Shown here one piece after another: positions 16,710 to 64,000 of a stretch of 64,000 nucleotides of DNA (its first letter is position 1; each line of letters begins with the position of its first letter). The stretch covers positions 573,412 to 637,411 of the forward strand of contig RHPI01000008.1 in the NCBI GenBank assembly GCA_009103225.1. The letters are read 5' to 3'. The stretch comes from Chlorokybus atmophyticus. Lineage: Eukaryota > Plantae > Mesostigma and Chlorokybus algae. The translations under genes and the position numbers were made by a program. The notes beneath the pieces are model-generated. The model searched no databases and was not told the DNA's origin. It was given only the letters and a program-made list of their open reading frames with translations.

Positions 16710-16782
16710 GGGGATGTAGCTCAGATGGTAGAGCGCTCGCTTAGCATGCGAGAGGTACGGGGATCGATACCCCGCATCTCCA
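16710..16782 (+). tRNA. trnA-AGC: tRNA-Ala (anticodon AGC), intronless, 73 nt
   Basis: GGGGATG TAGCTCAGATGGTAGAGC GCTCGC TT AGC AT GCGAGAGGTAC GGGGATCGATACCCC GCATCTCCA folds as a cloverleaf; T4 at ~16802. Confidence 0.98.
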
Positions 16783-16849
16783 CTAGCCAATCACCTTTGC
16801 TATTTTCATCTGCAGTAATGATGTTGTCCCCATTCCATTGATGAGTGTC

Positions 16850-42554: not shown

Positions 42555-45069
42555 GGCTTATTGACTTACACCGAAGAGCATGTACACTGGCTCCAGGCAC
42601 ACAGTGACATCCTGCTACCATGCGTAGGCCATGGTGCTCCGACATTCTATTTCACGACAAGGGGGGCATACTTTCGTCCTCATCTTGCAGATGCTGCCAA
42701 CCTCAAGTACTATGGGCATCACGCCAACCTTACAGCTTACACTCTCAGCAGTCTGTTCGAGTTTGCCTTACATTCGGGGACACCCGGCCCGACAGGGCCA
42801 CTATCCACAAACATTGCAGCGAACTTGGAAAGACCTGCAGGTGGAAGTTTGATGCCACTCGGGAAGGTCCCTATGCAACCGTTCGTCACTGGCAACGACA
42901 ACAACAAGACCAAACCAACAGCAAGAAGAGTTCAAGTGTGCTTGCAGTACACATCCATACGCTGAGCTGGTGCACCCGACATTGCAGCATGTCATGTTGT
43001 GTGATTGTAGCATTGCTAGTTTGCACATCTTGCAGACATTGCATATTTCTAGTACTAAGTTTCGCATGCCAATGAAAGCAGATGTTTGCGGTTGTATGCC
43101 ATCAGTACGTAAAGGCATATAGGAATTCGCAGAAGCTCAGGAAATTAAACAACGACAATTAAGACTACTGCAGCCTTGCGTGCAAGCTGTAATGGCAGCA
43201 GTGTTGTCCAGAGCCACTGCTTGCATGCACTGGTTGCCTACCACCAATTTACAGGCTTACAAGATGGATACTGTAGCTCAAGCTGCAGTGAAAGAGCTAC
43301 AACGCCTTCTCATTATCACGGAAGTAGATAAGTGTGCAAGCACTTTTGTTGTTGTGTGCAAGACTTTCCATTTGCATCTCATGCGTGCAGAATTGCAAAC
43401 TAATACTGATCAGCTCCAAAGTGACAGCTGGCAGAACACTGTACTACGCCACACACAATACAACTCTTAGCATGACTTCGTGACTTCATAACCTGGGTTG
43501 GTGTGTCTACCTCACTTGTACCTAACCATCAGGTTACACAAGACGCCACCAGCACCTCGCTTCATTGTAGCAGCCTACCAAACCACTTTAACGGATGCTA
43601 ATGACTGGATGGCGAGGGTTTACAATGCTATGGCTTACGTGGTTAATGTTTTATGGCAAGATGCTGTAGGCCTACCAGCAGCCAGTTTGATTATCAACGT
43701 TTCAATGGCGGTCAAAAGGCTGCAGCATCACATCACATCAACACTACGAGGTCACGCACCGACAAGAAACAACCTCTCACCCTACACACTTGCGACTTCA
43801 CCACACTCTACACCAAGCTGCAGCAGCAAAACCTCACCGACCGTATGCGCGGCTTGTTGGACAAGTGTCTACCAAGGTGCACTCTCTCCACGTTAACGTT
43901 TACAAGGGAGAAGTCAACCTTGAGTGGGCTTGTGGCAGTACTGTTAATTACACGGAAGGCACAACACGCACTTTCACTGCCGTGCAATTACATGACTTGC
44001 TCAAGTTTTCGTTGGCTAACTTGTTCGTGCAAAAAAGTGCAAACAGCGTATACAACGATTGGAATTCCTATGGGGAATTCAGCAGGGGTTTACTTAGCTA
44101 ATAATACGCTCTTTCCTTAAAAGCTGAACTTCATCGAAAGATTGGGGCGTACGGTGATCCTGTGCTGTTGCAACGCTTTTCTCCGTGCATTTTGCGCTAT
44201 GTGGATGATCCATCTGTGGTTGAGGTGCCTGAGTTCCAGCAGGCATTGTACTTGTCACCCACAACATCAGCAGGGGGCAATACTCACAGGCAATGCTCAC
44301 TGTCGTTCAGTCTGCCACTGCTGTGCCTTTCTTGGATTTATGCGTCCTACAGATGAAGGACATAGGCCTTTGCACAAAGGTGTACATCACGAGACGTGAC
44401 CCGGCCTATGTGAACATCTCCGTGCGTAGGGCACCTCACCCTTATTCCAACATTGCACGAATAGCCAAACATAAATAGAGAGTAGTTGTATCGCAGTGCA
44501 TTTGCTTTTAACGCATTTGTACATGTCGCTCCCATTGTATCAGAGATGGTGCTATTGTTGGGGGACATCAGTCGAGGTGGCCATACTAAGGAGCAATTGT
44601 TGCGAAGGTTGCGTGGGAAGCTGTGGAGCATGCAAGGCATGGCATACGACACGAATTATAAGTAGTTGTACAATGGTGGTGTATAGGTTAGAGAAGGCAG
44701 CAATCCTGGCCAGCACAGGGTGACGGACGTGAGCCGATATTCCAACAAGCAGCACACGACATCGACAATAGATAAGTACGGGTAAGTGATGGATAAGTGA
44801 TTATGGGGAGCAAATTGCCCGCATACATGTTGAGTTGATGCACAGCTCACAGCAATTCCATAAACACTCCCTCGCGGTAGTCTGCAGGTGCTTCCTTTGC
44901 TGCTTGCTGCTGCCCCTTCCCCCTTCCCTCTGCCCACACTCTTCCCCCAGTCTATAGCTAGTGCACTTAGCTATAGCTTAGTGGGGCCCCCCACCCCGTT
45001 GTTTTTGCCTTGCTTGTGCTGTATTATCATGCTTTGCTGTGTCGTGCTTGCTTGCTTGACTGATTGGCC
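42555..45069 (+). mobile_element. Degenerate Penelope-like element (Naiad/Chlamys type): CxC linker, RT and 3' UTR
   Basis: KCACSTHPY...HVMLCD...STKFR (CAC at 42937-42945), ITEVDKCASTFVVVCK, LPHLYLTIRLHKTPPAPRFIV, TCDFTTLYTKL, GIPMG, LRYVDD, PFLDL; several stops and frameshifts. Confidence 0.85.
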
Positions 45070-47310
45070 CATGTCATTGGAGTCCTTTCCCAAATGCATG
45101 ACAGTGGCAGGAGGAGCAGAAGTTGGATGCTGACTCCTCCATGAGTCCTGCTATAACAAGTGCTTGGCAGCGCTGGTCCACCAAGTCTTCATCCAGCTTG
45201 GAGAGTTTGTACTGACGCCGGAACACGGGCTCGTCATCGACTAGCTCAATGTGCCTCTGGTACGCTAAGCACTTGCCCAGTTCTTGAACATTGAAACTGA
45301 GATGTTGTCTTTACTTGTTCAGCAGAGTTCTTATCTTCTCCTTATCCTCCAGTGGCTAGCGGTCCCATGGCGTGGTCCCAAGAGCATGCCATAGCTATGA
45401 CCGAAATGTCTTCCACTGTAACCGCCGCCTGTTCTTCCATGACAGCTGTCTTCATGGCAGTCTAGGCTTTAAGGGTGTCTTGTGGGCGATCAGTATATCC
45501 CTCAAACATGTTTTCAAGATCCTCGAAGGTCACATGTTGATCTTAAATTGCGAAACACATCTCCAAGAGCCACACAATGCTATTTTGGTTAATGGCTCTG
45601 CCCAGCAAGACGCGTTGTAAGCGATCTGTGAGGGCGCAGCCGGTAATGCTGCCTGCGTGGAAGCCCATGGCACGCTTGCTTCTCGAGTGTTTTCTTCCTC
45701 CAGCTGGCCAGTGGCGGCATTGAACACCATGGTAAGCAGGGTAAGAAACCAAGGTAGGCAATGCGCGATAAGGTGCGCCAGGTTGAATGCAGGCGTAGAA
45801 GTGCTTGTGGTTAGGCATGGTGACAGGTTGATATGTGCGGCCGGGGTCGAGTATGTCATCGACTAACAAATTCTTCGGGCGCGTGGCCGAACAGTGCGCT
45901 GTTAGGCTGAGTTCTTCCATGGTGGCCAGGTTAGTCCACTTGGCTTAAACACGATGGGCGCGGGAGCCATGGCGTGCAGCGTTGACCTTTGTTGGGTGGC
46001 TCAAGATGGAACAGACCATGTGAAAGTCCTGTTCGACGTTGCCGCGTCTATCGTCGCCGCAGTGCACATTCTCCACAATAAAGGCCAGAGGTCTACGGAT
46101 CTGGTGGTGTTGCAGCAGGTGTATGACCCGCATGAGTTCCCTGAACAAGTTGAAACGGGGATCTTGCAAGCTGCGTCCTGTTCCAGTGCGCAAGTGGCCT
46201 TGACACTCCCAGCCTGCTATGAGGAGGTTCACATTACCCAGGGCCAGCAGGTGGTCTTCTGGATCAACCGAATGTTCTGCGGCAGAGCCCTCCGAATGCC
46301 GTGCAGAGCTGAGAGAGGAAGCTGATGTGGGTAGCGCTGATGCAGCTATCGCAGGTGATGACGCACAGCTTTTGTGCGACATTGTCAGGGTCACAGTAGT
46401 AATAATGGTTGACCTTGACACCGGTGTTTAGCACATCTGCTAAGCCGCTGCCAACTCCTCCGAATAGCTCTACGAGTGTGATACCTTGCAGCCGGCGAAC
46501 GGTGTAAAACTCGATCATGCCGGTGGCCACAGTAAACTGTGCAGGAATGGTGTCGAGTGTTACGATGGCTGATGCGCGTATGGGCGCGTAGTGTAGCTGG
46601 AGCAGCTGGTATGCTGTGACAAAGGTGTCGTCATGGCGCTGTGCAGAGTTCCATAAGGCCACTTCCAAGGTAACTTCTGTTGCAACTTCGGCGTAGAGCA
46701 TACAATCGGTGCCTGTAAGAACCACTGCAGCCATACATCGCTGCAGGCGTGAGGTGAGCACGAAGTCAACTGACAGGTAGCCCTTGACGTGCCACTGCGC
46801 TAATAAACCAAGCTTCTTCGGTCCAGCTGTCAGTGTCAATGCCGACAGCAAAGCTGAAGTCCTGCCCAAAGATGAGGTCGTAGTCACGGGAGTGCGTGAC
46901 CACCACGCGCTGTGCGTACTCCATGGTGTGAGCGCGATCAATGCCAAGCAGCGCGATGGGGAACGCCGTCTTAGTGACACTCAGTGCGCCGTGCTCGTTG
47001 TTGAGGATAGTGCTGAGAATGGTCGAGGGTTCAGGTTGGTGAGGTCGATGCCCAAGCTGCGAGCAAGGTATCAGCCCACGAACACTAGCTGTGCTCCGCC
47101 ACCCAGCAGGACAAGCTTGGGCGCGCGTTCGTCGATCAGCACGTGCTTTTCGAGGTTGTCCATCATAGTGGCATTGGCATTGACCTGGGTATGGTCGTTA
47201 TGCCAGGACGCAGTGCTATTGTCAGGGGTTGGAGAATGCGGAAGCACTCTCAGTGCGACGACGCCTCCTCTGCGTTGAAAAGCCCCGCGCGTAGAGGAGG
47301 ACGGAGCAGG
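45070..47310 (-). mobile_element. Ty3/gypsy-Dnmt element, pol part: aspartic protease, C5-cytosine methyltransferase, start of RT (pseudogenised)
   Basis: VLLGGGAQL...YDLIFGQDF (protease); ELFGGVGSG (motif I, ~46450-46470), GWECQG (motif IV, 46197-46214), ENV (motif VI, 46065-46073), RAHRV*AKWTNL (motif VIII), ERAMGF...VLLGRA (IX/X); then DDEPVFRRQYKLSKLDEDLVDQRCQAL (RT start). Confidence 0.88.
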
Positions 47311-48709
47311 TGTAACGGGAGCAACAATAATAGGGGTGTTACTGCTACCTAAATAACACATTCTGTATGAATAAGTATCTAAATATGCTTATTTATACCT
47401 CTTTTCTACGGTTCCTTCTTATTGAAGGCTATAATGCTTTATCATAGCTTAAATAAGTCCTAATGGGTGTAGAACCGCTTATTCAAGCCTATTTGGTGTC
47501 ACATTTGATAAAATGTGATTACTATCTCGTTAGGTACCTTATGATAGGTATCTTTCGATAGGTACCTTATCGGAGCTGTGATTGGCTCACGCTAGATTTC
47601 CTAACTACCCTATCTGTAGGGTTGATGTCTAGTTGTGAGTTAATTATCGAGAGGTATATAGTTGATATACTCTTGATATAAAAGGTCACATCAAATTGAT
47701 GTGGGGACTTTCAGTTTTCTGCTCAGTGGCGGCCACGCCGTTGAAAGGCTTGTCATAGGCGGTGTGGGTGTTGGGGTAGAGGATTGAAGGGGCATCACCG
47801 GCGACGGTGGTGCTGTTACATTGGTATCCAGGATCTGGGGGGGTGACGTGGGTACTTATAGGGGGCGGCGACCTGCTTTCGGCCAATCAGAAGGCGGCGG
47901 CGGCGGCCTCCTATTCGTCCACGCAGCCCAAGCTTGAAGCTAGCTTCCCTGCGCTATCTCCACGTTGAAGCCACCCATCAAAGAGGCGGCCTCTCCATGT
48001 GTGAGGTACCATCACATACGTCGGTGACTTGCCTGCTTGCCAGGTGCTTGTCAGATGCACGTGTGTACTTTCATGCACATCATCATCAGTGACTTATCAG
48101 TGCATGAGTGCGGACTGCTGGTGCCATCACTGCTTGTCACACTTAGTGCACTATCATTGCTTGCAATGATTGCCTGTCGTTGCATGCGGTGAGTGCTTGT
48201 CATTATGCTTGCCAATGCATGTCACAGTTGGTCACTGTACGGCTTGCCTGTTGCATGCCTGTGGCTTGCCTGTTGCATGCCTGTGACGTACCTGTGACCA
48301 GCTGCCAGCTGCTTTTTCGGGTCGCTTGACTCCGGTCCGTAAGTTCCAAACCAAGCTGTTCCCAAACCCTCCCCCTCTGGCTTCGGCCTGAAGATTGGGA
48401 CTTGGTTAGATTAGCTTTGGGGAGATAGTAAGACATTCTGTTCCCAAACACTGTTAGTCTGAAAACCTCCCCCTCTGGCTTCGGCCTGGAGATTGGGACT
48501 TGGTTGAGGACAACACAGGGTTAGGACATTCTGGTCCCATTCACACTTGTTCTGTTTGGTAACACTCCAGATCCAACCTTTTCTGTTTTGGGACTGGTTT
48601 GGACTATGTTTAAGACTTTTACAACTTGGGGTCATTTTGATCCTCTCGTTAAACCTGGTCCATTGGTGAGTTTCTCACCGTTCCATTTTGCCTGTTTTGC
48701 AGACAAATG

Positions 48710-51700
48710 GAAGAGAACTCGGTGCCCACCTCAAAGGGGGAAAGCTCGCAAAAAGCAATTATCCCGTGAGGAGGAGTTTCCATCTATGGAGGATATTCCA
48801 ACCCGGATGATGCACCTGATGAGTCTCATGCTGCTAAGGATGGCTTGGTGGAACCAGACGGGCCACCACCACCACCATCATTCGTGCAGTCTGAAATCTC
48901 AATTCGCTTGACAAAACAGGATTTGATGGGCCACTTTCTTGGCACCTATGATGAGGAGCCTCGTGAGGCGATTGTCTCGCTCGTCAACTTCCTCTTTAAT
49001 GTGGCGGAAAAGCTCTCAAAGCTCACCACTTTTATGGGGCGAGATTGGGAGGGATCGATGGGTGAAAGCAAACGTGTTTTGAACATAACCGAGCGCCTTC
49101 AACGCTCTGACAGTGGTCCACCTGTTCAGGCGCTTGCTCGACCTGCCGAGTTTGTTCCCAACAAACAAGCGGCAATTTTCGACTGGCTCGTGAAGCTGAA
49201 ACACTATGTCAACTCCCTTCACATTTCTGAGGAGGGCAAGTTGCGTGTAGCTAAGTTGCTGATCCCAAACGATGCCTTGGCAGAGTGGTACCGCCGTAAG
49301 CAACGGGATACGAACCTCGGGCGGGAAGTGAATCAGTTGTGCTCTTGTATGGAGCAGCGCTATGGTGGCGCAGATCCTGCTCAGATTGCTCGCAACCAGC
49401 TGCACAATCTGCGTCAGAACGGGCGTCCGGTTCAGCAGTATATCCAGGATTTTCAATTGTTTGTCAGCAGGATCATTGCAGGCAAACTACCCATTAGTGA
49501 TGCCGATCAGCTGGATATGTTCATGCGGGGCTTGGACATAGATCTCGTGCAGCATGTGGCCGTCAACCCCGCGAGTTTGCAAGAGTGGGCCTCGACGAAT
49601 TTACCAATGCTGATGCACATGGTTGCTGCTGTGGACTGTGTGAAGCGCTCTCACGCAAACATGCAAACCACAGCAAAAGAGGCAGTCCCGGTTTCAGCTG
49701 CAAAGCGCCCGGCCACTGACAACAAACCTTATGTGAAAAAGGCGAAAACATCTTAGTGTTGAAGGTATTACATGGGTGATGCTTGTGTCCGGTCAGCTTG
49801 CCCTTCAAACAGGAGTCGAGGGTCGAAGGTACCAGGAAGAAGCGCGTGGACTCCAGACTTAGCAAGACGGTCGAGTCATGACGGACTCCGGACCAGGCTG
49901 CTTGGTAGAGCCTTGGGAGAAATCGCGTAGCTTTGTGAATACGTAAGTTTAGCAGGCGTGGCTTAGCTTGTTGGAAAGCTCTGGTTGTGAGCTAGACAGC
50001 GTAGCTTATAGAATAGCAATCGGCTGAGTATAGCGCACGCGGTGCTTGCCAATGTAGACGTGTGTAGAGACTGGCGGGGTATAAAGCCCAGACTTGTTGC
50101 AATGAAAAAAAAGAGGTCACGATGTAGCATGTGTGCGGATGCTATGGCGGCAGTAGCAGTCATGCTCTTGTGTTGATGTTGTTGGCGTGTCACTTGCACG
50201 TGTGTATGTCAACAGGTTATGGGCCCACACATGCTTGTGTAGGTTGATGGAGTGTGTTACAATTGTATGTGTAGCTGTAGTTGCTTTGTGGTAGTGTGGG
50301 GTTGTGAGGTCTGTGAGCAGAGAGGGCAACCAACCAAGGCCACCAGCATGGACAGCTTGAAGATTGCGATTGGACTACTGGACGTTGACGACTACAACAC
50401 TTGGAGTGTGAAGATGGAGCTACTACTGGCCCACAAGGAGATCTTTTGGTGACTGAAGAAGAGTACGTGAAGTACTTGGAAGAGGAGGCGTCCTTGATAC
50501 GTGGGAGCTGAAGATGTCAGCTCGTGTTGCTGAGTGCGAGGAATACTTGGTGGAGCGTGGTGAAGCGCTTTAAGGAATGCGAGAGGCAACCCGTGGTAAG
50601 CACGTTGATGTGCTTGGTGGAAGGAAGGGGAGCAGATGGCAACCCTTGAGGTCGAGCACGGTGGAGTGTTTGATGGACCTTCCGAGAAGGGGAGCGAGGG
50701 CAGTCCTTGGTGAAGCACGGTAAAGTGCTTGGTACTTTGGTTGAAGCATGTGGAGTGCTTGGCTGAAGGTGCATGCGAGGAAGCGTGATGAGCATCCTGG
50801 AAGCATGATCACTTGGAAGCTGAACATGGAGCATCCTGGAGGTGTGAAGCTTGGAGGCTATACGCAGAAGCGTGTGGACGTGGACATGAAGATGGCCATG
50901 GTGTGCGCAAGGTTGCTACATTGACAAGGGTGGTTGAGGATGGAGTTGCAAGATACCACAAGGTCATGAGTAACAAGGAGGCACAAGTAGGTTGCGATTG
51001 CGAAGCCCGTGGGAGCTGCAAGTGGTGGAAAGCAAGTTGACTAGAGGAGTCATGGGCTGATACCAGAGACAGAGGCACTGTCAACGAGGACAGATGCAGC
51101 GGGTGCATGAAGGCAACATGTATGTACAGCAAGGAGCAAGGTTGGTGGTCAACCATGACGCTCGAGTTGCTGTGGAAGTGAATGACTTCAAGATCGTCCA
51201 TGAGAAGCATGGAGGCATGAGAAAAACAGGTGAAGGCTTGCGTGAGAAGCGGTGTGCGTGTGTATTGGAGGAGCTGATGTTGAAGGACAAGCTGCCCGCG
51301 TGGGAGTGTTGAAGGTATTACATGGGTGATGCTTGTGTCCGGTCAGCTTGCCCTTCAAACAGGAGTCGAGGGTCGAAGGTACCAGGAAGAAGCGCGTGGA
51401 CTCCAGACTTAGCAAGACGGTCGAGTCATGACGGACTCCGGACCAGGCTGCTTGGTAGAGCCTTGGGAGAAATCGCGTAGCTTTGTGAATACGTAAGCTT
51501 AGCAGGCGTGGCTTAGCTTGTTGAAAAGCTCTGGTTGTGAGCTAGACAGCGTAGCTTATAGAATAGCAATCGGCTGAGTATAGCGCACGCGGTGCTTGCC
51601 AATGTAGACGTGTGTAGAGACTGGCGGGGTATAAAGCCCAGACTTGTTGCAATGAAAAAAAAGAGGTCACGATGTAGCATGTGTGCGGACGCTATGGCGG

Positions 51701-51901
51701 AAGTAGCAGTCATGCTCTTGTGTTGATGTTGTTGGCGTGTCACTTGCACGTGCGTATGTCAACACTCAGCCTGCTGGCCCCGACAACGCGGCCAAATCCA
51801 CTATCACTTGCAACTTCTGCAAGAAGACAGGTCATGGGGAGGCCAAATGCTATGCAAAGCAGAATGCACAAAAGGCCAAGCAGAAGAAGGACAAGAAATA
51901 G
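48710..51901 (+). pseudogene. Chromovirus gag, interrupted by the Copia insertion at 49757-51764
   Basis: ORF 48845..49756 (QIARNQLHNLRQNGRPVQQYIQDF) continues after the insertion as SQPAGPDN...CNFCKKTGHGEAKC (zinc knuckle); stop TAG 51899-51901. Confidence 0.9.
49757..51764 (+). mobile_element. Non-autonomous Copia derivative (2008 bp): 458-bp LTRs, half-tRNA-iMet PBS, vestigial gag start
   Basis: LTRs 49757-50214 and 51307-51764 (TGTTGA...TCAACA, 5 differences by eye); PBS GGTTATGGGCCCAC at 50215; MDSLKIAIGLLDVDDYNTWSVKMELLL; flanks CTTAG/CTCAG. Confidence 0.93.
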
Positions 51902-51950
51902 GAATTGTCCGTGGTTGGTAACTTAGTCGAGCAGAACGACTTTTTAAACT

Positions 51951-54900
51951 TTGTATTTCTTGATAAAGTTTTCTCTCTTTGTGATGTATCAGATGTATGG
52001 ACTGCTAATGAGCACACCACCTGTGTTGACAAATGCAAACGGTTGTGTTTTAATTAATATTCCATTCTCTGAATTGGTAACTGCTGTTAAGCCCTTACAC
52101 GAGTTGCAATTACAACATGCTGTCACTGCATGTGTAGTTATCCCTCAATATCATGGCTCGTGGTCGCGATTGTTGAAAGGGGGAGAAGTAATTATGCAAC
52201 TCTCACGCAAAGATACAGGAACTTCACCGTTACAAGTGATTTTTATCAAGTCTGCTACCAATCACGGCACTTCGACATTAGCTACATTTGATGGTCACTC
52301 AGTGCCTCTCAAATGGAGATTTGAGAGTCAACTTATGGGTACACCATGTACAGCATGGATCGATACTGGTGCAAACCATAACTTTGTTGAACATGCTTGG
52401 GTGAAACGTAATAACATACCTTTCACACCAACCACGTCGTATATACGTGCTGCTGGTTCCACCCTTAATGCAATTGGGGAGGTAAAGGGGCGTTTTTTTA
52501 TTAACAGCCACAAAACTCGACCAACTTTTATCGTGGTGGATATAGGTATCCCCGGGGTGGATGTTGTTTTGGGTGAACAGTGGCACACCGAAGCAGGTTT
52601 GCAATTGGACTCTCGAGCAAATACGTGCACCCTTCGTAAGGGTAAACGTAAGGTAACGTTAATCGCACCTGTACTCGCACGTGTTGCTCGCGACAATGTT
52701 CCGCTCCTCTCTGCTATGCAACTGAAACGTTGCATGCGCAAACGTGAGGAAGTATATTTGATGCACTTACGACAGGTAGAGACACCTATTGAACAGGCCG
52801 ACTCTGACCCTGTGGTGTAATCACTTACAGAACAATACGCAGATGTATTTCAGGATGAACTCCCGGAGTTGCCTCCTGATAGAAACATACCATTATACCA
52901 TTCCGTTGGAAGAGGGGGCAAAGCCACCTTGGCGGCCTATTTATAGACTAAGTCCCTTAGAACACGCGAAAATGGAAAATCAGCTTAAAAAGTTATTGGA
53001 CAAAGGTTTAATAACAAAGAGCATATCTCCTTTTGGTGCACCGATTTTGTTTGTGCCCAAAAAGAATGGCAAGCTACGCATGTGTATTGATTGATTACCG
53101 TGCGTTGAACAAGGTAACTGTGAAAAACAGATACCCTTTGCCTCGGATTGATAATTTGTTTGATAAGCTGTCAGGTGCAACAGTGTTCAGCACACTGAAT
53201 TGATCGGTGGTTATCATCAAATCAAAATCCACCCGTCGGATATACAAAATACTGCATTTTGCACCCCACTAGGACACTTTGAGTATAAAGTGTTACCATC
53301 TGAGTTAATAAATGCACTAGCTACATTTCAGACAGCAATGAACACGGTATTTGCTGATAAATTGTACAAGTTTGTACTGGTATATCTAGACGATATTATT
53401 GTGTTCAGCAAAACCCGGGAGGACCACCACAGGCATGTGGAATTGGGTCTAGCTAAGTTACACAAAAACAAATTCTATGCCACCCTATCCAAATGCAACT
53501 TTGCAAAGGATGAACTGCTCTTTTTAGGGCATGTGATTGGCAAAGAAGGATTGAAACCAGATCCTCAAAAGGTGTGTGCGGTGAAGGATTGGCCACCACC
53601 CAAGGATGTACATCAGTTACGTGCTTTCTTAGGGCTAGCCAATTATTTCCGCAAGTTCATGCGAGCATACTCTAGCATGGCAAATCCTTTAACATCTTTA
53701 CTAAGAAAGGATGTTACATTTGTATGAACGGAGGCACACGAGGTTGCTTTGACACGCATTAAAGATGCATTAACACAAGCCCCTGTGTTAGCCTTCCCCG
53801 ACCACACCAAGCCTTTTGTGGTGATCAGTGATGCTTCCACCATTGGGTGTGGGGCAGTCCTTCTACAGGATGACAGATCATGTGCATATGAAAGCAAAAA
53901 GTTCATTCCTGCTGAACGTAATTACACAACCACTGAGCAGGAATTGCTCAGGGTGGTGCACGCGCTGCGCACATGGCGTTGCTACGTGGAAGGTGTGGAG
54001 TTTTCAGTTATTACTGATCACAACCCGCTCACATTCTTTCATACGCAACAAAATTTGTCGAGGCGGCAAGCTAGGTGGAATGAATTCATTTCTCGTTTCA
54101 CTTTCACTTGGCAATACTGTCCGGGTCGCACCAATGTGGCGGATCCACTAAGTCGTAGCCCTGCTCTTTTGGCACTTACGCGCTCTCGTAGTACGCGTAA
54201 TGTACAACAGCCTGAAGATCCTTTCCTGAAGGAGGTGTCCACAGGTTATAACTTAGATGATTGGTTTAGCAGTCAAACCAACTTGCAACAGCTTACTGCT
54301 GTTAGCAATCTGTGGTATAAAGGGGAGCAGTTGGCAATTCCCAACTCGGGCGACTTGCGTAAGCAATGCTTACATTTAGTACATGACCCGCCATATGCTG
54401 GGCATTTGGGGAAACACAAAACACTCAAAGCCGCGCAACAGTTATACTGGTGGCCGTCAATGTCAGCTGATGTGGATTAATATGTTCGCACATGTGACGT
54501 GTGTCAACGTAATAGGCCACTACGACAAAAACAAGCGGGATTGCTTAAACCATTGGCAATTTCAGAACAAAAGTGGGATAGTGTCAGTATGGATCTGATT
54601 ACTGACCTACCTGAAACAGCAGCCAAACACACTGCTATTGTGGTTTTTGCCCCGTGTTGCACAACTGTGAGTGCACGGGACTTGGCACATTTATTTGTGT
54701 CCACGGTCTTTCGAGTTCACGGTGTACCGCATGAACTTATCACAGATCACAGATCGTGATCCTCGGTTTGTCTCCAAGTTTTGGAGAGAAGTTTGTGAAT
54801 TGTTGGGGGTAAAACAAAACATGATGACTGCGCTCCATTCGCAAACGGACAGACAAACTGAGCGAGCAAATCAAATACTGGAAGAAATGCTTCGCCACTA

Positions 54901-55582
54901 TGTGGCTCCTAACCATGCTGCTTGGGAGGTACTTGCCTATGGCAGAGTTCGCTATAAACAACGCGTGGCAGGAAAGTGTAAAGGAAACCCCATTTTTCTT
55001 GAATTATGGGATTCGCTTGAACACACCAGCGTCATTGCATGTACCTCGCAATGCCCTGACTGTACCAGCGGCAAAGGAATTTGCCACTGATATGCAAGAA
55101 ATTTGGCTCGAGCCAAGCTGTGTCTGTCAAAAGCACAGGACAGGCAAAAAGCTTATGCTGATACATATCGAAGAATGGCCACTTTCGATGTCGGCGATAA
55201 AGTTTTGCTTAACGCAAAGAACTTAACCATCAAAGGTACGGGTGCTCGCAAGTTGCTGCCCCGATGGTTGGGTCCTTTCTCTATCACTGATAGAGTTGGT
55301 ACCCACGCTTATAGACTGCAATTGCCCCCAAGTGTGCGTATACACAACGTGTTCCATGTGAACTTGCTGAAACCTTACCGCTCAGACGGTAGAACTCAGC
55401 CTCCACCACCACCAGTAGAGGTGGACAGCGAGCTCGAATACGAGGTGGAAGCTATATTGAACCATAAGCTAAATAGTCGAGGACGCGCAACTCGCTATTT
55501 GGTGAAATGGAAAGGGTATGGCCCAGAACATAACAGTTGGGAGCCCGATAGGCATCTTACGCACTGCCGCGAGTTGCTTTGA
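51951..55582 (+). pseudogene. Chromovirus pol: Dam-like segment, protease, RT, RNase H, integrase, chromodomain (frameshifted)
   Basis: AWIDTGANHNF, KPPWRPIYRLS, LRMCIDYRALN, VYLDDIIVFS, VISDASTIGCGAVL, HDPPYAGHLG, SMDLITDLP, LLPRWLGPF, EYEVEAILNHK...YLVKWKGYGPEHNSWEP. Confidence 0.95.
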
Positions 55583-56246
55583 GCTTATTGGGATTCACGT
55601 CCTGTCCAATAACCTGTGGGCTTGGTTTTATGACAGACTGGCAGTGCAGTTTCATTACCACCCTGTTATTTCCTGCTATGTCACTGGTTACAAGTACTCG
55701 AAATCAAGCATGATCAACTTGAGTGCAACGAGGACGTGGAAAACCTAAGTGGAGGGGAATGTAACGGGAGCAATAATAATAGGGGTATTATTGCTACCTA
55801 AATAACACATTCTGCATGAATAAGTACCTAAATATGCTTATTTATACGGTTCCTTGCTTATTAAAGACTATGATGCTTTATCATAGCTTAAATAAGTCCC
55901 AATGGGTGTAGAACCGCTTATTCAAGCCTATTTAGTGTCGCATTTGATAAAATGTGATCACTATCTCGTTAGGTACCTTATCGATAGGTACCTTATTTGA
56001 GCTGTGATTGGCTCACGCTAGATTTCCTAACTACCCTATCTGTAGGGTCAATGTCTAGTTGTGAAATAATTATCGAGAGGCATATAGTTGATATACTCTT
56101 GATATAAATGGTCACATCAAACTGATGTGGGGACTTTCAGTTCTTTGCTCAGTGGCGGCCACGCCGTTGAAAGGCTTGTCATAGGCGGTGTGGGTGTTGG
56201 GGTAGAGGATTCAAGGGGCATCACCGGCGACGGTGGTGCTGTTACA

Positions 56247-58700
56247 GCAGGTGTCGATGATGTTGAGGTTGGGCCCGGGACGTACGGAGCATTCATGCCT
56301 GGTGCGGGAGGAGGAGGAGGCGTTTCATTCTGAGCCTGGTTACCCTGAAGTGACATGCGCACGGCGTGCGCTGCCTTTCGAACTAGCATGCCTTCCTACG
56401 TGGCAGTTAATTTATAGTGGTGATTCTCTACAGCTCTATGTGTGGCATGGGCAGCATATAGACGGCTCTTACCCACATCAAGCGGGTGTCGTCTGTGATG
56501 ACGGTTGCGCCCAGCACATTGCGGATGAATGCGTCCAACCAACCGGTGGTGAGGCCCATGTCAAGGATGGCCATTGCTCTGACCCGTAGCGTGCCTGCGT
56601 GTCGCGGTGAGACCACCAGGTGTTGTGGGCGGCGTTGATGCGGTCAATGTGCCGTGCGTACTCCGGTCCAGGCAGGTGAGCGATGGCCTCGGCCACCCCG
56701 TTAGATGTTGAAGATATTCTTGTATCTAGTCAGCTTGCCCTGTGGATAAGATAGCCGCGAGAAGGGTCTAGTCGCGGAGTTCAGTCGAGAAGGGTCCAGG
56801 CGTGGACATGAACCTTTAGTCTGGAAGGTTTTTAGGCGTGGCGGTAGAATTCTTGTAGCTTGATGGTTACATTACTATATGGCGCGTGGTATAGCTTGTT
56901 GGAAAGTTCTTAAAGGTAGTTACGTGGCGCAAGCTAAAGCGCAATTAGTTGAGTGTGGAATGGCTTTTGGAGTAAACAGGTGCAGAACTGGCGGGTGTAA
57001 AATCCCGCGTGATGACTTGGTTTTAATTCTTTTGGATCAGCCTTATGTGCATGCCGCAGGAGCTGGCAGGGTGGTGCCTGCCCCTGATGCCGGTGTGGTT
57101 GCAACAGTGGGCTGACCTATTGACGACGGGCCGGCGCCGGATGCTGCGGGGGCATTTTGAGTGGTGGCAGCAGCTGCTGCTGCCGCAGCGAGAGCGTCGA
57201 TCTTCTTGCGCCTTGTCCTCGCATTCTTCGAGTTTAGAGCTGCGGCGTTGTTGACCAGACGATGCCCAGCGAGCATAGTGGCAGGTCTGAAAATCGTTTT
57301 CCTGGGCCTTGAGCTGTGTTTTCAGCTCCTAGGTGCGTGCTGCCATAGCAACTGCAGCTTTTAAAGCCGCGACTGCTGCCAATTGTCGTGCTGCAGCAGC
57401 GGCGCGGGGACGAGCGTTGTCGGCCTGGCGATGTGGAGGCTGGTTCTTACCCCGATAACCATTGCCTTCGTTGCGGGCTCCAGCGATGGTGTGGTTGGCG
57501 CTGTTGTTGTTGTTGTTATTGAACCCGGTGATTGGCCTCAACTTTGAGAACTTGGTATAGCACACTGTCTCAAAATGTCCTATCTTGTTGCAGTGATCAC
57601 ATACTAGAGCGGCATATTCCTCAGTGCATTCCTTCTGATAGTGACCGTGCCGTCCACAGCCATGACATAGAACCGGAGCAGTCAGAGCGGCATGAGCTGC
57701 ACGAGGTGGTCCCTTGGGTGCCGACCTCGTAGGCGGCTGATCTTGTGCACGCTCTCTGCGGCTTGGCTCAAGTGCTAGTGGGGCTGAGAGACATGAGACG
57801 GTGTGGGTGCCATCCAACACCGCCTTCTACCAGTTTTGTCGGTTGTAGATGGACAGTACAGCTGGTGACGCTTGCTGCAGTGTATACCCACGTGGATGAG
57901 TACCACTCAGCGTCATGCAAACACTGTTGCGGAGCATTGGCTCGAGCTCGGACACATAAACCACTGCTGCTTGCTCTTCTATCAGCACGCGAAAGTCTGC
58001 ATCTGACAGCAGGCCTTCCATGCGAGCATACATCTGGAAGGGGTCGTTGTCGAATTTGCGTTTGAAGTGACGCAGCTCATCGATGTTGTAGATGGTTGAA
58101 GGAGGAAAAGTATGCCATAAGGCTGCGTACAGGTCTGTAAGTGGGGATGCGGTGCGAACCACATCGATGGCAAGAGTGATTGGACGCAGGGTAACATATG
58201 ATGCGGACATCGTGCTACCTAATGTTGCAATCAGGCCAGGGGTTAGCGGCAGGCTCGCAGCTGTATCTTCCGCTGTGCATCAATGTGTCTGCAGCAGGAT
58301 GGCCATGCGCTTAGCCACACGGTCTTGCCGAGATGAGGTCAGAGCGACAATCCCTTCAGCTATTTTATCTGTGGTGCTCACTGCTGGTTCCAGTGTCTCA
58401 GCTTGCCGACTGATGGTGCGTATCATTGCAATAGACGGAGGACCGGGAACGGTAACACGAGCAGGCATTACCGGTGCGGTAGGGGTGGTGACCGCAGTTT
58501 TTGTGCGTGGACCAATGGCGACAGTCTGATGTAGAGCAACCAACCTCCATACTGAACGGGCCTTCAGATTTAGTGTCTGCGCGGACATCTGGAATGATTG
58601 ATCCTTGTCCAGGCTTGCTGCTGTTGTGGGTGAGAAAAGCCATCTTGGTCTCAAACTTGATGATGAACGCATTGAGTGCCAGAGTGCTAGGGCGATAAGA
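56247..58700 (-). mobile_element. Ty3/gypsy-Dnmt element, gag part (continuation of 45070-47310)
   Basis: Two zinc knuckles CHGCGRHGHYQKEC and CDHCNKIGHFETVC; gag-like ELRHFKRKFDNDPFQMYARMEGLL; removing the chromovirus rejoins VPGPTSTSSTPA-PSSSTRGAFQ in frame. Confidence 0.82.
56706..57040 (+). mobile_element. 3'-truncated Copia-family LTR inside the gypsy-Dnmt gag
   Basis: TGTTGAAG start; shares gcttgttggaaagt and ctggcgggtgtaaaatcc with the family; no TCAACA end. Confidence 0.7.
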
Positions 58701-58789: not shown

Positions 58790-59206
58790 TGTTGAAGGTA
58801 TTCCATTAGTGATGCTTGTATCCGGTCAGGTCGCCCTCCACAGGAGTCGAGAGTCGAAGGTATGTTGGGCTGAGCACATGGACTCCGGACTTATCAAGGC
58901 GGTCGACCTAGGACGGACTCTGGACCAGATGCTGAGTAGTAGAGCGTTGGGAGAAACCGCGTAGCTTTGTGAATTTGTAAGCTTAGCAGTCGTGGCTTAG
59001 CTTGTTGCAAAGCTCTAATTGTGAGTTAGACAGTAATTTAGAGAGCGTCCAAAGGCTGAATATAGCGCACGCGATGCTCGCGAATGCAGACGTGTGTAAA
59101 AACTGGCGGGGTATAAAACCCATGGAGTTGTGGCATCAATGGCAGTAGTAGTCATGCTCTTGTATTGATGTTGTTGGTGAGTCACTTGCACGTGTGTATG
59201 TCAACA
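58790..59206 (+). mobile_element. Copia-family solo LTR (417 bp) without TSD
   Basis: TGTTGAAGG...GTCAACA, clearly similar to 49757-50214; flanks CTGCC/CGTCG do not match. Confidence 0.88.
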
Positions 59207-59863
59207 CGTCGTGCACCCTTCTCTCTTGATTAAAGCCCAGAGGTGAATGTGTTTGCAGTATTTGTATCCAGTGGCGCTCAATGTGACGAGCCACCTTGTA
59301 CCACTCGTTTGCTGTCATTTGGCGCATAGGAATATGTTCAATCGGTAAAATACCCCAGCTGTGTTCATCTCTGTGCCCCATATCCTTCTCCAGCGAGGTA
59401 GCCCTTGCTGCATCTGCCATCGATGCATGCTGTTTGACCCGCTCACAAGCGTTATTGAAGGTGAGGCCAATCCAATATTTTGTGGTGCCATCCACGGGAT
59501 ATACCACATAGATGATATAAGTGTTATCACCTAGATTTAACGCAAAACGCAAAAACAACTTTTCAAGACGATTCTCATGGATTTTGCGGCGAATTGGCAA
59601 GTTGGCACCATAGTAGGTTTGCTTGATTGTTGAAAGGATGCTCCGCCAGTATGCTGCGCTTTCCTCTCGTTCAGAAGCAAAGGAAGAGGCTTATGACTGT
59701 TTCGACCCTAATACTTGAGCATCCTTGGCGCGATCCACCCCCTCCAACCCGCACCCTAGCGCTCAGTAAGTGCGATAATGCTGGCCCCCGCCCTTGCAAT
59801 GTAGCAAACATAAGCCCAACCGACGATCTTGCCACCGTAAACTCACGCACACAAAAGCCCCAT

Positions 59864-60175
59864 TGTAGGGCTTGTAGAACCCGCATATGATGTGTGGTGC
59901 GAAGGGCTGCAAGCAACTGTTAAAATAGCCGCCTGTTTTAAAATTCTGGCATTTAATGGTGCCGTTAAATGCCAATATCCACATCCCATGCTCTGTAGGG
60001 CTTGTAAGACCCTCGTAGGGTTGTGTGGTGCGAAGGGCTGCAGGCAATTTGTAACTATCCGGCTATTTTGAGATACCGGCATTTAACGGCGCCGTTCAAT
60101 GCCAGTATCCACATCCCATTCTGTAGGGCTTGTAAGACCCTCGTAGGTTGTGTGGTGCGAAGGGCTATTGGCAAT
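59864..60175. repeat. ~2.4 tandem units of ~129 bp, each with a 26-bp near-palindrome
   Basis: Units start at 59864, 59994 and 60122 (tgtagggcttgt); palindromes GGCATTTAAY-GGYGCC-GTTMAATGCC at 59948-59973 and 60078-60103. Confidence 0.9.
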
Positions 60176-61078
60176 TTTTTGAAGCCAGTGTCATGTATGA
60201 GTTGTTTGTGACATGGCTACGCATAGTGGCGGCATGCGCGGCGATGGCGATAATAGCCGTTGAATGCCAGCATCCATGTCTCACATAATACTTAGTAGTT
60301 ACAAGCACATCAATTAGAAGTTGGTCACGTCACTAGGCAGAAGCTAACAAAGAGCGCAAATCCACATAAATAACAACTTGCACGACAAGTTTGCCATACG
60401 TAAACCACCGCAGAAGAGATTGGTGGGTGGTGAGCTCATGGAGTAGGAGGCAAAGCTATGCTAGGTGAATACCACCTTCAGACCGCAAAGGTCACAGAGT
60501 GCATAGCAGCCAGTCAATGCATGCATGCATGCGTGGTGGGTTACCACTCGTTGTACCACATATAGCGCAGATTGCACGCATTGATTGGGAGGATGCGTGA
60601 GTGATCACCACTGATCGGACCACAAAGGTCCAAGATCGCATTCAGCGCAATGCACCTCATATCAAGGCTTTCCCACCAGTGCCAGCATCCACGTCACATG
60701 CAGTAGGTAGCAGTGCGCAAGCACATCTTCTGCCAAGGCAAATCAAGCCAGCACAGCATTTAGCAATTGCGTACGGCTCGCGGGTATCATCTTCAAGCTG
60801 ACACCATGCAGAATAGTTCTGCATGGTGTCAGCTTGTAGATGATACCGCATGCATGCATTCTCGCGAATTTACGGAGATTTGAAGAATTGGCACTATAGT
60901 GAGTTCGCTTGAGTGTCGCAAGGATGCTTTGTCCGCTGAGAAGCGGAAACAAAGGTTTGTGATTGCTGCGACCCCAGCACCTGGTCGTCCTGGTCATTGT
61001 CTACCCTATCCATCCCGCGCACTAGTGCTTACCAAGTGCGCTAATGCTGGGCCCCCGCCCTTACCAATGAATACCAAC

Positions 61079-61167
61079 TGTCACGAATTGGGATAAATTG
61101 TGACAGACCTCACTCATGATAGTGTCTTTTACTACCATAGCCTAGTGGTCGGGCCCCAATTGTTACA
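61079..61167 (+). mobile_element. 89-bp solo LTR of the TRIM, perfect 5-bp TSD CCAAC
   Basis: TGTCAC...GTTACA; CCAAC at 61074-61078 and 61168-61172; reverse complement of 63700-63788 with one substitution. Confidence 0.96.
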
Positions 61168-61558
61168 CCAACCAAGCAGACAACTTAGGCACAGCAAGAT
61201 AGCGCAAGCAAGCAGATATCCCCACGCAAAAGCGTGAGCTCGAGGTTGCCCTTGAGGCTTGCCCCAAGAGCTGCCAGGGGCGATGGGAGCGGACCACCAC
61301 CCAAAGGTACGGGCTAGGCGTCAACTAGAACTCCGGGCCGAAAGCATAGTACACAACAGATGGATTAAGGCCAATCAGTCAAGCAAGCAAGCACGACACA
61401 GCAAAGCTGGATAATACAGCACAAGCAACGGGGTCGGGGGCCCCACCTAAGCTCTAGCTAAGTGCACTAGCTATAGACCGGGGGAGGAGTGTGGGCAGAG
61501 GGAAGGGGGAAGGAGCAGCAGCAAGCAGCAAAGACAGCACCTGCAGAGCACCGCGGGG

Positions 61559-62100
61559 TGTTGAGAGTATTCCTACATACGATCAGCATCGACCCTCCAC
61601 ACAGGAGTAGAAGGTCGTAAGGACGAGCACTAGGTCCGGACTTAGCAAGATGGCATCGTCGGACCAGACTCCGGACTCCAGACTGGAGCCTTACTAACTG
61701 CTTCGTATCTCCGCGTATACTTACTCATATTAGGCGTGTAAGAGCTTGTTGGAAAGCTCTGGTTGTAAGAAAGACAACACAACTTAGAGCGCGTCAAAGG
61801 GCTGAGTATAGCTTAGTATAGCTTACGCAGTGCTTGCAAATGTAGACGTGTGTGTAACTGGCTGGTATAAGAACCAGCGGACAACTTGTAATAGATGAAT
61901 GTGATGTGACTTGTGTATGCTCTGGTGGCGGTAGCTCTGTCCGTGTGTATCCATGCTTGCCTCAGCTACATGTGCATGCTAGTCCTTCAACAGGTTATGG
62001 GCCCACACTACGCTTGAGGAGTGTGAGACTAGCTTGTGTGCATAGTAGTTCTACACTACGGTAGCTTGTTGGTAGCAGAGCCTTGGGTGTCAACTGCAAG
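61559..62100 (+). mobile_element. Copia-family 5' LTR (61559-61992) with half-tRNA PBS; runs into an assembly gap (N 62101-62216)
   Basis: TGTTGAG...TTCAACA followed by GGTTATGGGCCCAC at 61993. Confidence 0.9.
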
Positions 62101-62216
62101 NNNNNNNNNNNNNNNNNNNNNNNNNNNNNNNNNNNNNNNNNNNNNNNNNNNNNNNNNNNNNNNNNNNNNNNNNNNNNNNNNNNNNNNNNNNNNNNNNNNN
62201 NNNNNNNNNNNNNNNN

Positions 62217-63278
62217 TTGTACTGAACCAAAACACAGGTGCCATGTGAAGAACTGCAACGAAGCAGCTTTTCAAGTCTGCGCGACGTGTCCAAACAGCCT
62301 CTGTCGACGGCACGCTGTGGGTAGCATGGTTGAGGTTACGTGCTCGCGATGCGCTGCATACGAAGAAGGTGGTGCTCCAGCGCAGCTCCCAAGGGAGAGC
62401 CTTGCTCGTCGTTCTCTGCCGGGCAGTTGCGGTAGGGTTTCACAACCTGTGCAGAGTGGGCTTCAACACGTTGAAGAGAGTGGGGATGAGGCTAACAATG
62501 GTAAGCTGCTGTGTGCTTGAGCTTGTTGATTTGCGTTGTGGTTCTTGCCCAATTGAACCATTTATGGCTGCAGAGGCAGTCATGATGGAAGTTGACGATG
62601 AAGACGAAGAGGGCTGTAATCAGCAACCCACGACGGCTGCGGCAGTTGTAGACCTCGTGGGCAGCGATGATGATATCATGGTGCTGGACGATCCAGTCAG
62701 CAACCCGCAGCCGTCAACACCGCAGCCACTGTTCATTTACCCTAGTGCAAGTGCACGTGATGCGGTGCCAGTGCTTGAAACGGACACGAGGTTGCTGGAT
62801 GGCAGACAAGAGCTCAATGACACCATCCTCCACTTCTTTTGCAGGTATGTGATTTGTTGCGTCTGTGTTATTCGTGTATCTCATATGTACGTGGGATGCA
62901 CATGCAGATACAAGGAAGAGGAAATCTTAGACAGAGCAGATGGCATTCAGGTGAAGCTGTTCCACCCGCATTTCTACACCAAGATCGTGCGCTGCCATAG
63001 ACAAAATGACTGGCACACGAGCAATCACAGGTTAGACAGCTGGGAGAGTGATCCGTTTGCCAAGAGGTTGCTGGGAGTGATTGTCAACCCAGACACGCGG
63101 TGAGAATAAGCGCCAAGAATATCTTGATGAATTGCTGCTGTATTTGCAAACTGGAATTATTTTGATTGTCCACAGGACTCACTGGAGTCTGCTGCTTGTG
63201 TGCAATCCTGGAGGCCAACTTGGAAGTGACACGCCGCCTTTACTCGTCCATCTCGACTCCCTTGGCCTGCATCGCGAC
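62217..63278 (+). CDS. Ulp1/C48 SUMO-protease-like gene with N-terminal Cys/His zinc finger, interrupted by the TRIM array
   Basis: CHVKNC...CATCPNSLCRRH...CSRC; VVDLVGSDDDIMVLDD (SIM-like); LFIYP...LDGRQELNDTILHFF, VKLFHPHFYTKI, HWSLLLVCNPG...LVHLDSL; GT-AG introns. Confidence 0.8.
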
Positions 63279-63315
63279 TGTAACAATTGGGGCCCGACCA
63301 CTAGGCTAAGGTAGT

Positions 63316-63319
63316 AAAA
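63316..63319 (-). terminator. Candidate Pol III T4 terminator in the TRIM LTR (second copy at 63740-63737)
   Basis: The only run of 4 or more T on the - strand of the 421-bp unit. Confidence 0.55.
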
Positions 63320-63664
63320 GACACTACCATGAGTGAGGTCTGTCACAATTTATCCCAATTCGTGACATTCCTCCCCAATTTAACCCATGAGTTCCTCATA
63401 ATCCAATGAGGCACTAGCCCACGTCGCCGTTTTCGCGGCCGCACCACAATCGGTCGGTGCCCGCGGCCTGTTGGATCCGGCCAACGAACGGTCATGACCG
63501 ACCGAACGGCCATCCTCACCGCGCGACCTGCCATCGCAGCGCGACCGCTCACGCGGCCTTAGGTTGAACTGGCTCGGCGCGCAGGTCGTGATCCCGCGCC
63601 CAGCCTAGGGCAAGCCGCCCCAAATGTTTTTGTTGTTGCCTTGGATCTGCCTCAGTCCCCTACG

Positions 63665-63729
63665 GGAATTGAACCTGAGACGTCAAGCTCCGAAACCATT
63701 GTAACAATTGGGGCCCGACCACTAGGCTA
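63665..63729 (-). promoter_or_regulatory. Type-2 Pol III promoter: A box TAGCCTAGTGG (63729-63719) and B box GGTTCAATTCC (63675-63665)
   Basis: Both match the consensus (TRGCNNARYGG; GGTTCRANNCC); starts are 54 nt apart. Confidence 0.75.
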
Positions 63730-64000
63730 TGGTAGTAAAAGACACTACCATGAGTGAGGTCTGTCACAATTTATCCCAATTCGTGACATTCCTCCCCAAT
63801 TTAACCCATGAGTTCCTCATAATCCAATGAGGCACTAGCCCACGTCGCCGTTTTCGCGGCCGCACCACAATCGGTCGGTGCCCGCGGCCTGTTGGATCCG
63901 GCCAACGAACGGTCATGACCGACCGAACGGCCATCCTCACCGCGCGACCTGCCATCGCAGCGCGACCGCTCACGCGGCCTTAGGTTGAACTGGCTCGGCG

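Follow-up and report, generated by a model that had tools for sequence, protein, structure and literature searches.

Among TRIMs, Helenus elements harbor tRNA-derived sequence in their LTRs and the Ajax and Cassandra elements 5S-derived sequence in theirs, the three being jointly designated TRIMp3 (Kojima 2024, PMC10886601), with sizes ranging from 311 to 1263 bp (PMC10886601). In Helenus, the conserved motifs are TRGCY and YGG for box A and GGTTC for box B (Kojima 2024, PMC10886601). Cassandra occurs as LTR-internal-LTR tandem arrays (Kalendar 2020, PMC7215508), and its R region measures 18 bp according to the summary given in Kojima 2024 (PMC10886601). Both Cassandra and Ajax are thought to use an internal Pol III promoter, which is 5S-derived (A box, IE and C box) and located wholly within the LTR. 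For Helenus, the consensus sequences compared here were those of Helenus-1_SMo, -2_PGr, -4_PGr, -4_PSt, -5_PSt and -2B/2C_ToGe, and in every one of them the LTR contained both boxes, A and B, with a T4-T6 run after them. The whole tRNA-like unit (acceptor, A and B) is thereby present with its T-run in every LTR, and each of the LTRs compared looks like a self-contained small-RNA gene. Because the T-run is located within the LTR, a full-length RNA would need terminator read-through, and R would be the tRNA-like sequence itself. An earlier note on the DNA studied here had stated that known Pol III TRIMs carry their whole promoter in the LTR, which is in line with the definition of Kojima 2024 (PMC10886601) and with the Helenus consensus sequences compared.

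Here, we analyzed a TRIM of the streptophyte alga Chlorokybus atmophyticus, whose genome is about 85 Mb (PMC7027972), in a window of 64,000 nucleotides, i.e., the whole stretch of DNA under study. In this element, a tRNA-type A box and a tRNA-type B box are located on either side of the boundary between the LTR and the internal region.

Anatomy of the TRIM and of its insertion site

The array, the related solo LTR and the neighboring features were delimited as follows (window positions).

63789..64000, minus strand: internal region of the upstream array unit, 3' part, truncated by the window end; same sequence as the complete internal region over its final 212 nt
63700..63788, minus strand: middle LTR of the array, 89 bp, TGTCAC...TGTTACA; serves the complete unit as 5' LTR, with the polypurine tract (PPT) before it and the PBS after it
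63700..63706, minus strand: LTR 3' terminus TGTTACA; the LTR ends in ...CAATTGTTACA at 63700
63687..63698, minus strand: PBS TGGTTTCGGAGC, 12 nt, beginning 1 nt past the LTR 3' CA; unique in the window
63368..63699, minus strand: complete internal region, 332 bp, 61% GC, non-coding
63368..63379, minus strand: PPT ATTGGGGAGGAA adjoining the 3' LTR, read from the sequence
63279..63367, minus strand: terminal 3' LTR, with an A box at 63308-63298 and a T4 at 63319-63316; no B box downstream
61079..61167, plus strand: solo LTR of the same TRIM family, matching the middle LTR at 88/89 positions; it retains an intact A box, and no B box follows
63174..63278, plus strand: last exon segment in one copy of a Ulp1-like peptidase gene, disrupted by the TRIM array (tblastn of Chlorokybus paralogues)
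47311-56270, plus strand: gypsy element with LTRs TGTAAC...TGTTACA, PPT GGAGGGGAA and the 5-bp target-site duplication (TSD) GCAGG

Read on the minus strand, the array consists of a partial internal region, an LTR, a complete internal region and a second LTR, followed by flanking DNA. It forms a 421-bp direct repeat in which 63279-63578 corresponds to 63700-63999, the unit length being 421 nt. This 421-bp periodicity suggests a repeat of about 300 bp; the true LTR is only 89 bp long and has TG..CA ends, since the solo copy, which has the 89 nt TGTCACGAATTGGG...CCAATTGTTACA in common with the array LTRs, bears a 5-bp TSD (CCAAC, at 61074-61078 and 61168-61172). The 5' flank of the array itself falls outside the window, and the TSD evidence comes from the solo LTR. 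The LTR/internal junction was thus fixed in three independent ways, namely by the solo LTR and its TSD, by the purine tract GGGGAGGAA that directly adjoins the LTR 5' TG, and by the position of the PBS. In the earlier note, every array unit was inferred to be active. The window shows one complete LTR-to-internal junction, the upstream unit being truncated at 64000, and hence contains a single copy of the B box of this element.

The LTR-internal-LTR element is 510 bp long, under 1 kb, and is a genuine TRIM in all its structural features (89-bp LTRs, PBS, PPT, a non-coding internal region and a solo LTR with TSD), as the earlier note had proposed. The longest ORF that the internal region contains is 69 aa, for which a search of 5.8 billion protein clusters gave no homologue. 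No family, including tRNA, 5S or hammerhead, was found in an Rfam scan of 60900-64000 at E <=10, and the sub-threshold matches to Ref68, Plastid-ycf2 and DAOA-AS1_2 were attributed to chance. Older or diverged copies of the TRIM were absent from the window (blastn of the unit, word size 7). Scans of viral contigs with two patterns returned no match, and a metagenome scan with the box-free junction 20-mer TGTTACAATGGTTTCGGAGC returned one (L001), considered as fortuitous, inside a bacterial gene beside a bacterial tRNA.

The terminal and the middle LTRs are identical at 88/89 positions, the single difference being located at LTR position 59 (A>T), just 5' of the A box. Over the three LTR copies, pairwise comparisons gave 1-2 differences for 89 positions, i.e., at least 98% identity. 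Because these copies are nearly identical and the window holds one copy of the B box, they give no statistical power on a preferential conservation of the boxes; both LTR substitutions sit in the stem of the T4 hairpin described below, outside the boxes. One base distinguishes the two array LTRs and one further base the solo LTR, which indicates that the family is young. Indeed, an LTR identity of 98-99%, a solo LTR with its TSD and an array within an exon indicate a young, mobile and recently active TRIM.

The gypsy element at 47311-56270 was considered as a candidate helper. It shares with the TRIM the terminal heptamer TGTTACA, the 5-bp length of the TSD and a similar PPT. However, its PBS (TTGGTATCCAGGATC) differs from that of the TRIM and there is no internal similarity, so that a helper role is unproven.

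Beside the array, the ORF at 62330-63103 (plus strand) encodes a Ulp1-type peptidase (PF02902); apart from three paralogues in the JGI genome of Chlorokybus atmophyticus (jgi/Chlat1), the protein collection contains no relative of it. In tblastn alignments, the paralogues were gap-free and near-identical to the locus (146/151 residues in the first segment and 33/35 in the second), the sole interruption being an intron-like insertion of 21 residues. The Ulp1 homology ends exactly at 63278, which is the TRIM edge, and the paralogues extend about 57-85 residues further. According to these alignments, the Ulp1-like gene is multi-copy, and one of its copies carries the TRIM array antisense within a coding exon.

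tRNA-type boxes on both sides of the PBS

The two boxes, and the elements of the junction region needed for their interpretation, are the following.

63729-63719, minus strand: A box TAGCCTAGTGG, LTR positions 60-70; exact fit to the strict pattern TRGCNNAGTGG
63675-63665, minus strand: B box GGTTCAATTCC, internal positions 25-35; exact fit to the strict pattern GGTTCRANNCC, preceded by a variable-loop-like GACGTC
63769..63775, minus strand: TATA-like GATAAAT, LTR positions 14-20, about 25-32 nt upstream of the predicted start zone; read from the sequence
63729..63751, minus strand: predicted 9-bp hairpin, partly CAUGGUAGU / ACUACCAUA, with the T4 at 63740-63737 in its loop
63602..63621, minus strand: leader side of a predicted 19-bp U5:leader duplex; its partner is 63728-63708, comprising the A box and the rest of U5

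The arrangement described in the earlier note, with an A box in U5, a B box in the internal region and the LTR end and PBS between them, was read directly on the minus strand. The boxes are 54 nt apart start to start, leaving a 43-nt gap that contains the LTR terminus TGTTACA and the 12-nt PBS. Seen as tRNA halves, the D-arm/A-box half is formed by the last 30 nt of the LTR, and the variable-loop/T-arm/B-box half begins 23 nt inside the internal region. The strict A box pattern has 7 matches in the window, 3 of which are the copies of this LTR, for 1.7 expected, and the strict B box pattern has 2 for 0.5 expected. Whether strict or relaxed patterns were used, this A and B pair was the only ordered one within 30-100 nt in the window; the native tRNA-Ala of the window has variant boxes, which these patterns miss. 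No B box was found within 100 nt of the terminal 3' LTR or of the solo LTR, which supports the earlier claim that both boxes come together only at an LTR-internal junction.

The resemblance to a tRNA extends beyond the two consensus sequences. The GGGC directly after the A box pairs with GCCT to give a complete 4-bp D-stem with a 7-nt loop, AGTGGTC, and in a three-way alignment the A-box region aligned with the D-arm of Helenus-1_SMo and with that of the tRNA-Ala of the window. GACGTC, before the B box, aligns with the position at which tRNAs carry the variable loop GAGGTC, and 3/5 pairs of the T-stem are present. The 9-mer GCCTAGTGG and the 11-mer of the B box each occur 14 times in Kojima's Helenus consensus file. 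A 13-mer (ATAGCCTAGTGGT) and a 16-mer (GGTTCAATTCCCGTAG) are identical in the LTR passages compared of Helenus-4_PGr/PSt and Helenus-5_PSt, the 16-mer, which lies around the B box, matching the T-arm of the Helenus-5_PSt LTR. As compared with a class-I tRNA, the TRIM has 11 inserted nt, AATTGTTACAA, corresponding to the LTR end, and in the alignment the position of the anticodon arm is taken by the PBS. No cloverleaf is formed, since the D-arm is intact while both the acceptor stem and the anticodon stem are lacking. ARAGORN with default settings detected no tRNA at the A/B region and, at the 80% threshold (-ps80), gave only a weak and implausible call with a 7-nt "intron"; Rfam on the 141 nt alone found no tRNA at E <=10. 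Considering the intact D-arm and the box flanks equal to tRNA-derived segments of Helenus, a tRNA-derived module is likely. We read the locus as two tRNA-derived half-modules flanking the LTR end and the PBS, and not as a tRNA gene. Two other origins were rejected. Read-through of a primer tRNA would have left an antisense tRNA right after the PBS, while the B box is in sense orientation and offset by 23 nt instead of 16; self-priming is at odds with an LTR devoid of any complement of the PBS.

Folding of the 201-nt U5-PBS-leader RNA gave a predicted energy of -79.1 kcal/mol (z = -3.64), and none of 200 shuffled sequences folded as well. In the predicted fold, the A-box segment AGCCUAG.GG pairs with CCCUAGGCU at 63610-63602, with pair probabilities of 0.85-0.94 for the nine A-box pairs checked. 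The remainder of U5 is predicted to pair with 63621-63611, so that the resulting 19-bp duplex encloses the PBS, and the B box is placed in a separate hairpin spanning 63681-63649. Retroelements typically have a structured PBS domain that is closed by a U5:leader stem.

Compared with the described TRIMp3, the Chlorokybus element falls within the size range of the group (421 nt for the unit and 510 bp for the element), and the tandem-array form is common to it and Cassandra. It shares with Helenus a short non-coding structure, TG..CA LTRs, a PBS, a PPT and 5-bp TSDs, as well as sense-orientation tRNA-type boxes (TRGCY..YGG and GGTTC in Helenus, TAGCC..TGG and GGTTC here). Its PBS is identical at 11/12 positions to that of Helenus-1_SMo from Selaginella (TGGTATCGGAGC), its box flanks are identical to those of some of the fungal Helenus LTRs compared, and its A-to-B distance is within the range of the Helenus sequences compared, Helenus-4_PGr having 59 nt. 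In neither element is the tRNA-like part likely to function as a tRNA. By eye, and with a three-way alignment covering the tRNA-like region only, there was no likeness to Helenus-1_SMo beyond the PBS and the box flanks, and the LTR of the latter measures 120 bp against 89 bp here. Unlike Helenus, the Chlorokybus TRIM has LTRs that end between the boxes and one B box per internal region; it is devoid of an acceptor stem, its T4 lies upstream of the A box, and there is no T-run between the predicted start and the next LTR. The defining feature of Helenus is therefore absent, as the LTR holds only the A-box half. In sequence organization, this split arrangement differs from every TRIMp3 described in Kojima 2024 (PMC10886601). 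In the literature surveyed, which was represented in part by titles and abstract openings, no promoter split across an LTR/PBS boundary was found.

Other classes of short elements share part of these traits. No 5S-like sequence was detected by Rfam in the Chlorokybus TRIM, in contrast with the 5S-derived promoters of Cassandra and Ajax. Ordinary Pol II TRIMs/SMARTs are of similar size and structure, are likewise non-coding and also occur as solo LTRs and tandem three-LTR forms, but are without paired A and B boxes, and the Chlorokybus element would be an ordinary TRIM if its boxes were non-functional. tRNA-derived SINEs likewise have a 5' internal A/B promoter and a short (<500 nt) non-coding RNA ending at a T-run; however, they lack LTRs, PBS and PPT and rely on LINE target-primed reverse transcription, whereas the Chlorokybus TRIM has LTR-type hallmarks and 5-bp TSDs. 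As for retrozymes, the hammerhead taken as their criterion was not found in the LTRs by Rfam.

Proposed Pol III transcription and alternative readings

From this organization, we propose that the boxes form a functional type-2 Pol III promoter that is split and complete only at the junction, with an R of about 10 nt, which would represent the first algal TRIMp3 and a new architecture; we give this reading a probability of about 40%. The broader proposition, that the tRNA-derived U5-PBS-leader module is a type-2 internal Pol III promoter, working or recently working, and a plausible TRIMp3 variant, comes somewhat closer to an even chance without reaching it. TFIIIC would bind only where an LTR precedes an internal region, and therefore the 5' and internal LTRs of an array would be competent, while solo and terminal 3' LTRs would not. 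In type-2 promoters, about 10-20 nt separate the start of transcription from the A box downstream of it. The start would accordingly be expected at LTR positions 40-46 (63749-63743), and the transcript would run for about 430 nt through a stretch without T4, ending at the T4 of the next LTR (positions 49-52, 63319-63316). The resulting RNA would carry a terminal repeat of about 7-13 nt (...GUAGUGUCUUUU), a PBS and a PPT, and an autonomous LTR element would reverse-transcribe and integrate it in trans. In this scheme, the LTR terminus and the iMet-type PBS would stand where the anticodon arm would be. Speculatively, the element may have originated from a Helenus-like ancestor in which priming moved to a PBS-like stretch within the tRNA-like module, shortening the LTR; such a shift would put the U5 boundary between the A and B boxes. 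In the Helenus-1_SMo sequence compared, the anticodon-arm region TGGCACCGGTG resembles the PBS of the same element at 8/11 positions.

A T-run scan showed one run of at least four T per LTR, at LTR positions 49-52 (unit positions 49 and 470), and after the junction start no T4 occurs for about 420 nt. This T4-free body is uninformative, as only 0.75 T4 would be expected by chance. In the tRNA-Ala gene of the window, a T4 follows the 3' end within about 25 nt and, judging from this one gene, T4 may be sufficient as a Pol III terminator in Chlorokybus. In the 5' LTR, the T4 is located 0-12 nt downstream of any plausible predicted start, which implies that Pol III would read through it just after initiation, or else that R would be absent. 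The R needed for the first strand transfer would be short, about 7-13 nt, for which the 18-bp R of Cassandra, as summarised by Kojima, offers a precedent. Besides, GATAAAT is compatible equally with a Pol II TATA box and with a plant-type Pol III upstream element.

In another reading, the boxes are a tRNA-derived relic, or part of a structured PBS domain, without any role in Pol III transcription. The A-box sequence would then be kept as the strand of a U5:leader stem presenting the PBS, with the B box in a leader hairpin, and transcription would be driven by Pol II from GATAAAT or result from read-through of the host gene, which is possible because the array lies antisense inside a gene. The predicted fold is in line with this reading, as its stable 19-bp duplex encloses the PBS and involves the A box with high pair probability, while the B box belongs to a stable hairpin and not to a T-arm. 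It is also consistent with the lack of a cloverleaf for ARAGORN (default) and Rfam, with the suitable distance between the TATA-like motif and the hairpin, and with the tRNA-like fragments found internally in other TRIMs, such as ...AAGGTCACGGGTTCAATTCCCAC... in the Helenus-2_PGr-I sequence available. Nevertheless, the boxes remain exact in consensus and correct in order, orientation and spacing, which would be unexpected in a decaying relic. Moreover, the 89-bp LTR has no evident poly(A) signal as read from the sequence, and a Pol II model shares the problem of a short R. On balance, this reading is a serious alternative to the split Pol III promoter, although we consider it rather doubtful.

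tRNA-like elements near retroviral PBSs have been proposed to act by tRNA mimicry, and the D-arm-like and T-arm-like pieces could similarly serve to attract or place the primer tRNA, or the proteins that bind it, and not TFIIIC. The symmetrical position of the two halves around the PBS (<=45 nt on each side) and the highly structured character predicted for the whole region would suit such a function. However, the halves adopt conformations that are not tRNA-like in the predicted fold, and any specific complementarity to, or mimicry of, an identified primer tRNA is hypothetical; we consider a mimicry function very unlikely. Least probable is a chance co-occurrence of two 11-mers, noticed after the fact, in a GC-balanced genome. 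An 85-Mb genome should contain about 0.8 strict ordered pairs and many types of motif could have been looked for, which would leave room for coincidence; yet the analytic estimate gives only 6e-4 such pairs in 64 kb when both strands are counted, and about 2e-6 in the sense strand of a single 510-bp element. With expectations this low, chance is a poor explanation of the box pair even when the after-the-fact choice of motif is allowed for, and the tRNA-like features beyond the consensus (the D-stem, GACGTC and the 13- and 16-nt Helenus identities) further argue against it. The split arrangement of the A and B boxes is hence a real sequence pattern and not a product of chance.

Significance for TRIMp3 biology

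Should the boxes be inert, the locus would serve as a warning that tRNA-derived fragments around PBSs can imitate promoters. If instead the split promoter reading is true, transcription would be confined to complete 5' junctions, with solo LTRs remaining silent, and the path from the start to the next LTR would be free of terminators. It would also mean that LTR boundaries can move through a promoter module. Screens designed for whole tRNA-like sequences within LTRs (Kojima 2024, PMC10886601) would miss this split class, and the range of TRIMp3 would reach an early-diverging streptophyte alga, Chlorokybus.

Pol III signals of a local tRNA gene and tRNA-like sequences in Helenus

The sole local example of Pol III signals available for comparison was provided by a normal tRNA gene:

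16710-16783, + strand: tRNA-Ala(AGC) gene

AATATAG and CAA motifs are located upstream of this gene, and its first run of four T (T4, the candidate Pol III terminator), in the context ATTTTC, lies about 20 nt downstream. Among published elements, the Data S1 entry for the fungal Helenus-2_PGr gives a 3'-half-tRNA-like stretch, AAGGTCACGGGTTCAATTCCCAC, in the internal region, together with a complete tRNA-like unit in the LTR (Kojima 2024, PMC10886601). Because the internal region of Helenus-2_PGr carries AAGGTCACGGGTTCAATTCCCAC, known families of TRIMp3 (TRIMs with a Pol III promoter) do, according to this entry, have B-box-like sequences outside their LTRs.

LTR elements and other repeats in the window

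Two LTR elements, one nested in the gag-pol region of the other, and two further LTR copies were recorded:

47311-56270, + strand: Ty3/gypsy LTR retrotransposon
49757-51764, + strand: nested non-autonomous LTR element, ~2 kb
58790-59207, + strand: LTR copy of the nested element's family (TGTTGA...CAACA)
61560-61993, + strand: LTR copy of the same family

The Ty3/gypsy element encodes gag, protease, RT, RNase H, integrase and a chromodomain-like ORF, its reading frames being broken into several pieces; its LTRs (~510 bp) are ~95% identical, its PBS is TTGGTATCCAGGATC and its TSD is GCAGG. The nested element has 458-bp LTRs (TGTTGAAGG...GTCAACA, 99% identity) and is flanked by a near-perfect 5-bp TSD (CTTAG/CTCAG), with GGTTATGGGCCC following the LTR in place of a TGG-type PBS. 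The copy at 61560-61993 is likewise followed by the same GGTTATGGGCCCACAC, after which comes the assembly gap (62101-62216). LTR-element fragments are nested throughout the 58-64-kb region. Other repeats recorded in the window are:

59864-60177: tandem repeat, period 130 bp, 2.4 copies, 84% match, containing the palindrome GGCATTTAACGGCGCCGTTAAATGCC
60783-60847: near-perfect inverted repeat, 31 bp (97% complementary), 3-nt spacer, ~230 bp upstream of the solo TRIM LTR
44900-45130 (+) and 61390-61480 (+), as listed: shared repeat (…CTATAGCTAGTGCACTTAGCT…GGGGCCCCC…), two copies in opposite orientations

The family of this shared repeat adjoins the solo TRIM LTR. In one copy, TAGCTTAGTGG at 44974 fits the strict A-box pattern, but no B box accompanies it.

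The gene hosting the TRIM array

The TRIM array breaks the following gene copy within an exon:

62585-63278, + strand: Ulp1-type peptidase gene copy (PF02902)

Directly upstream, the assembly is interrupted by a gap (62101-62216). Compared with its Chlorokybus paralogues, this copy is nearly identical to three (jgi/Chlat1), which sit on different scaffolds, one intron-like insertion excepted. The multi-copy Ulp1 family may itself be carried by a transposon.
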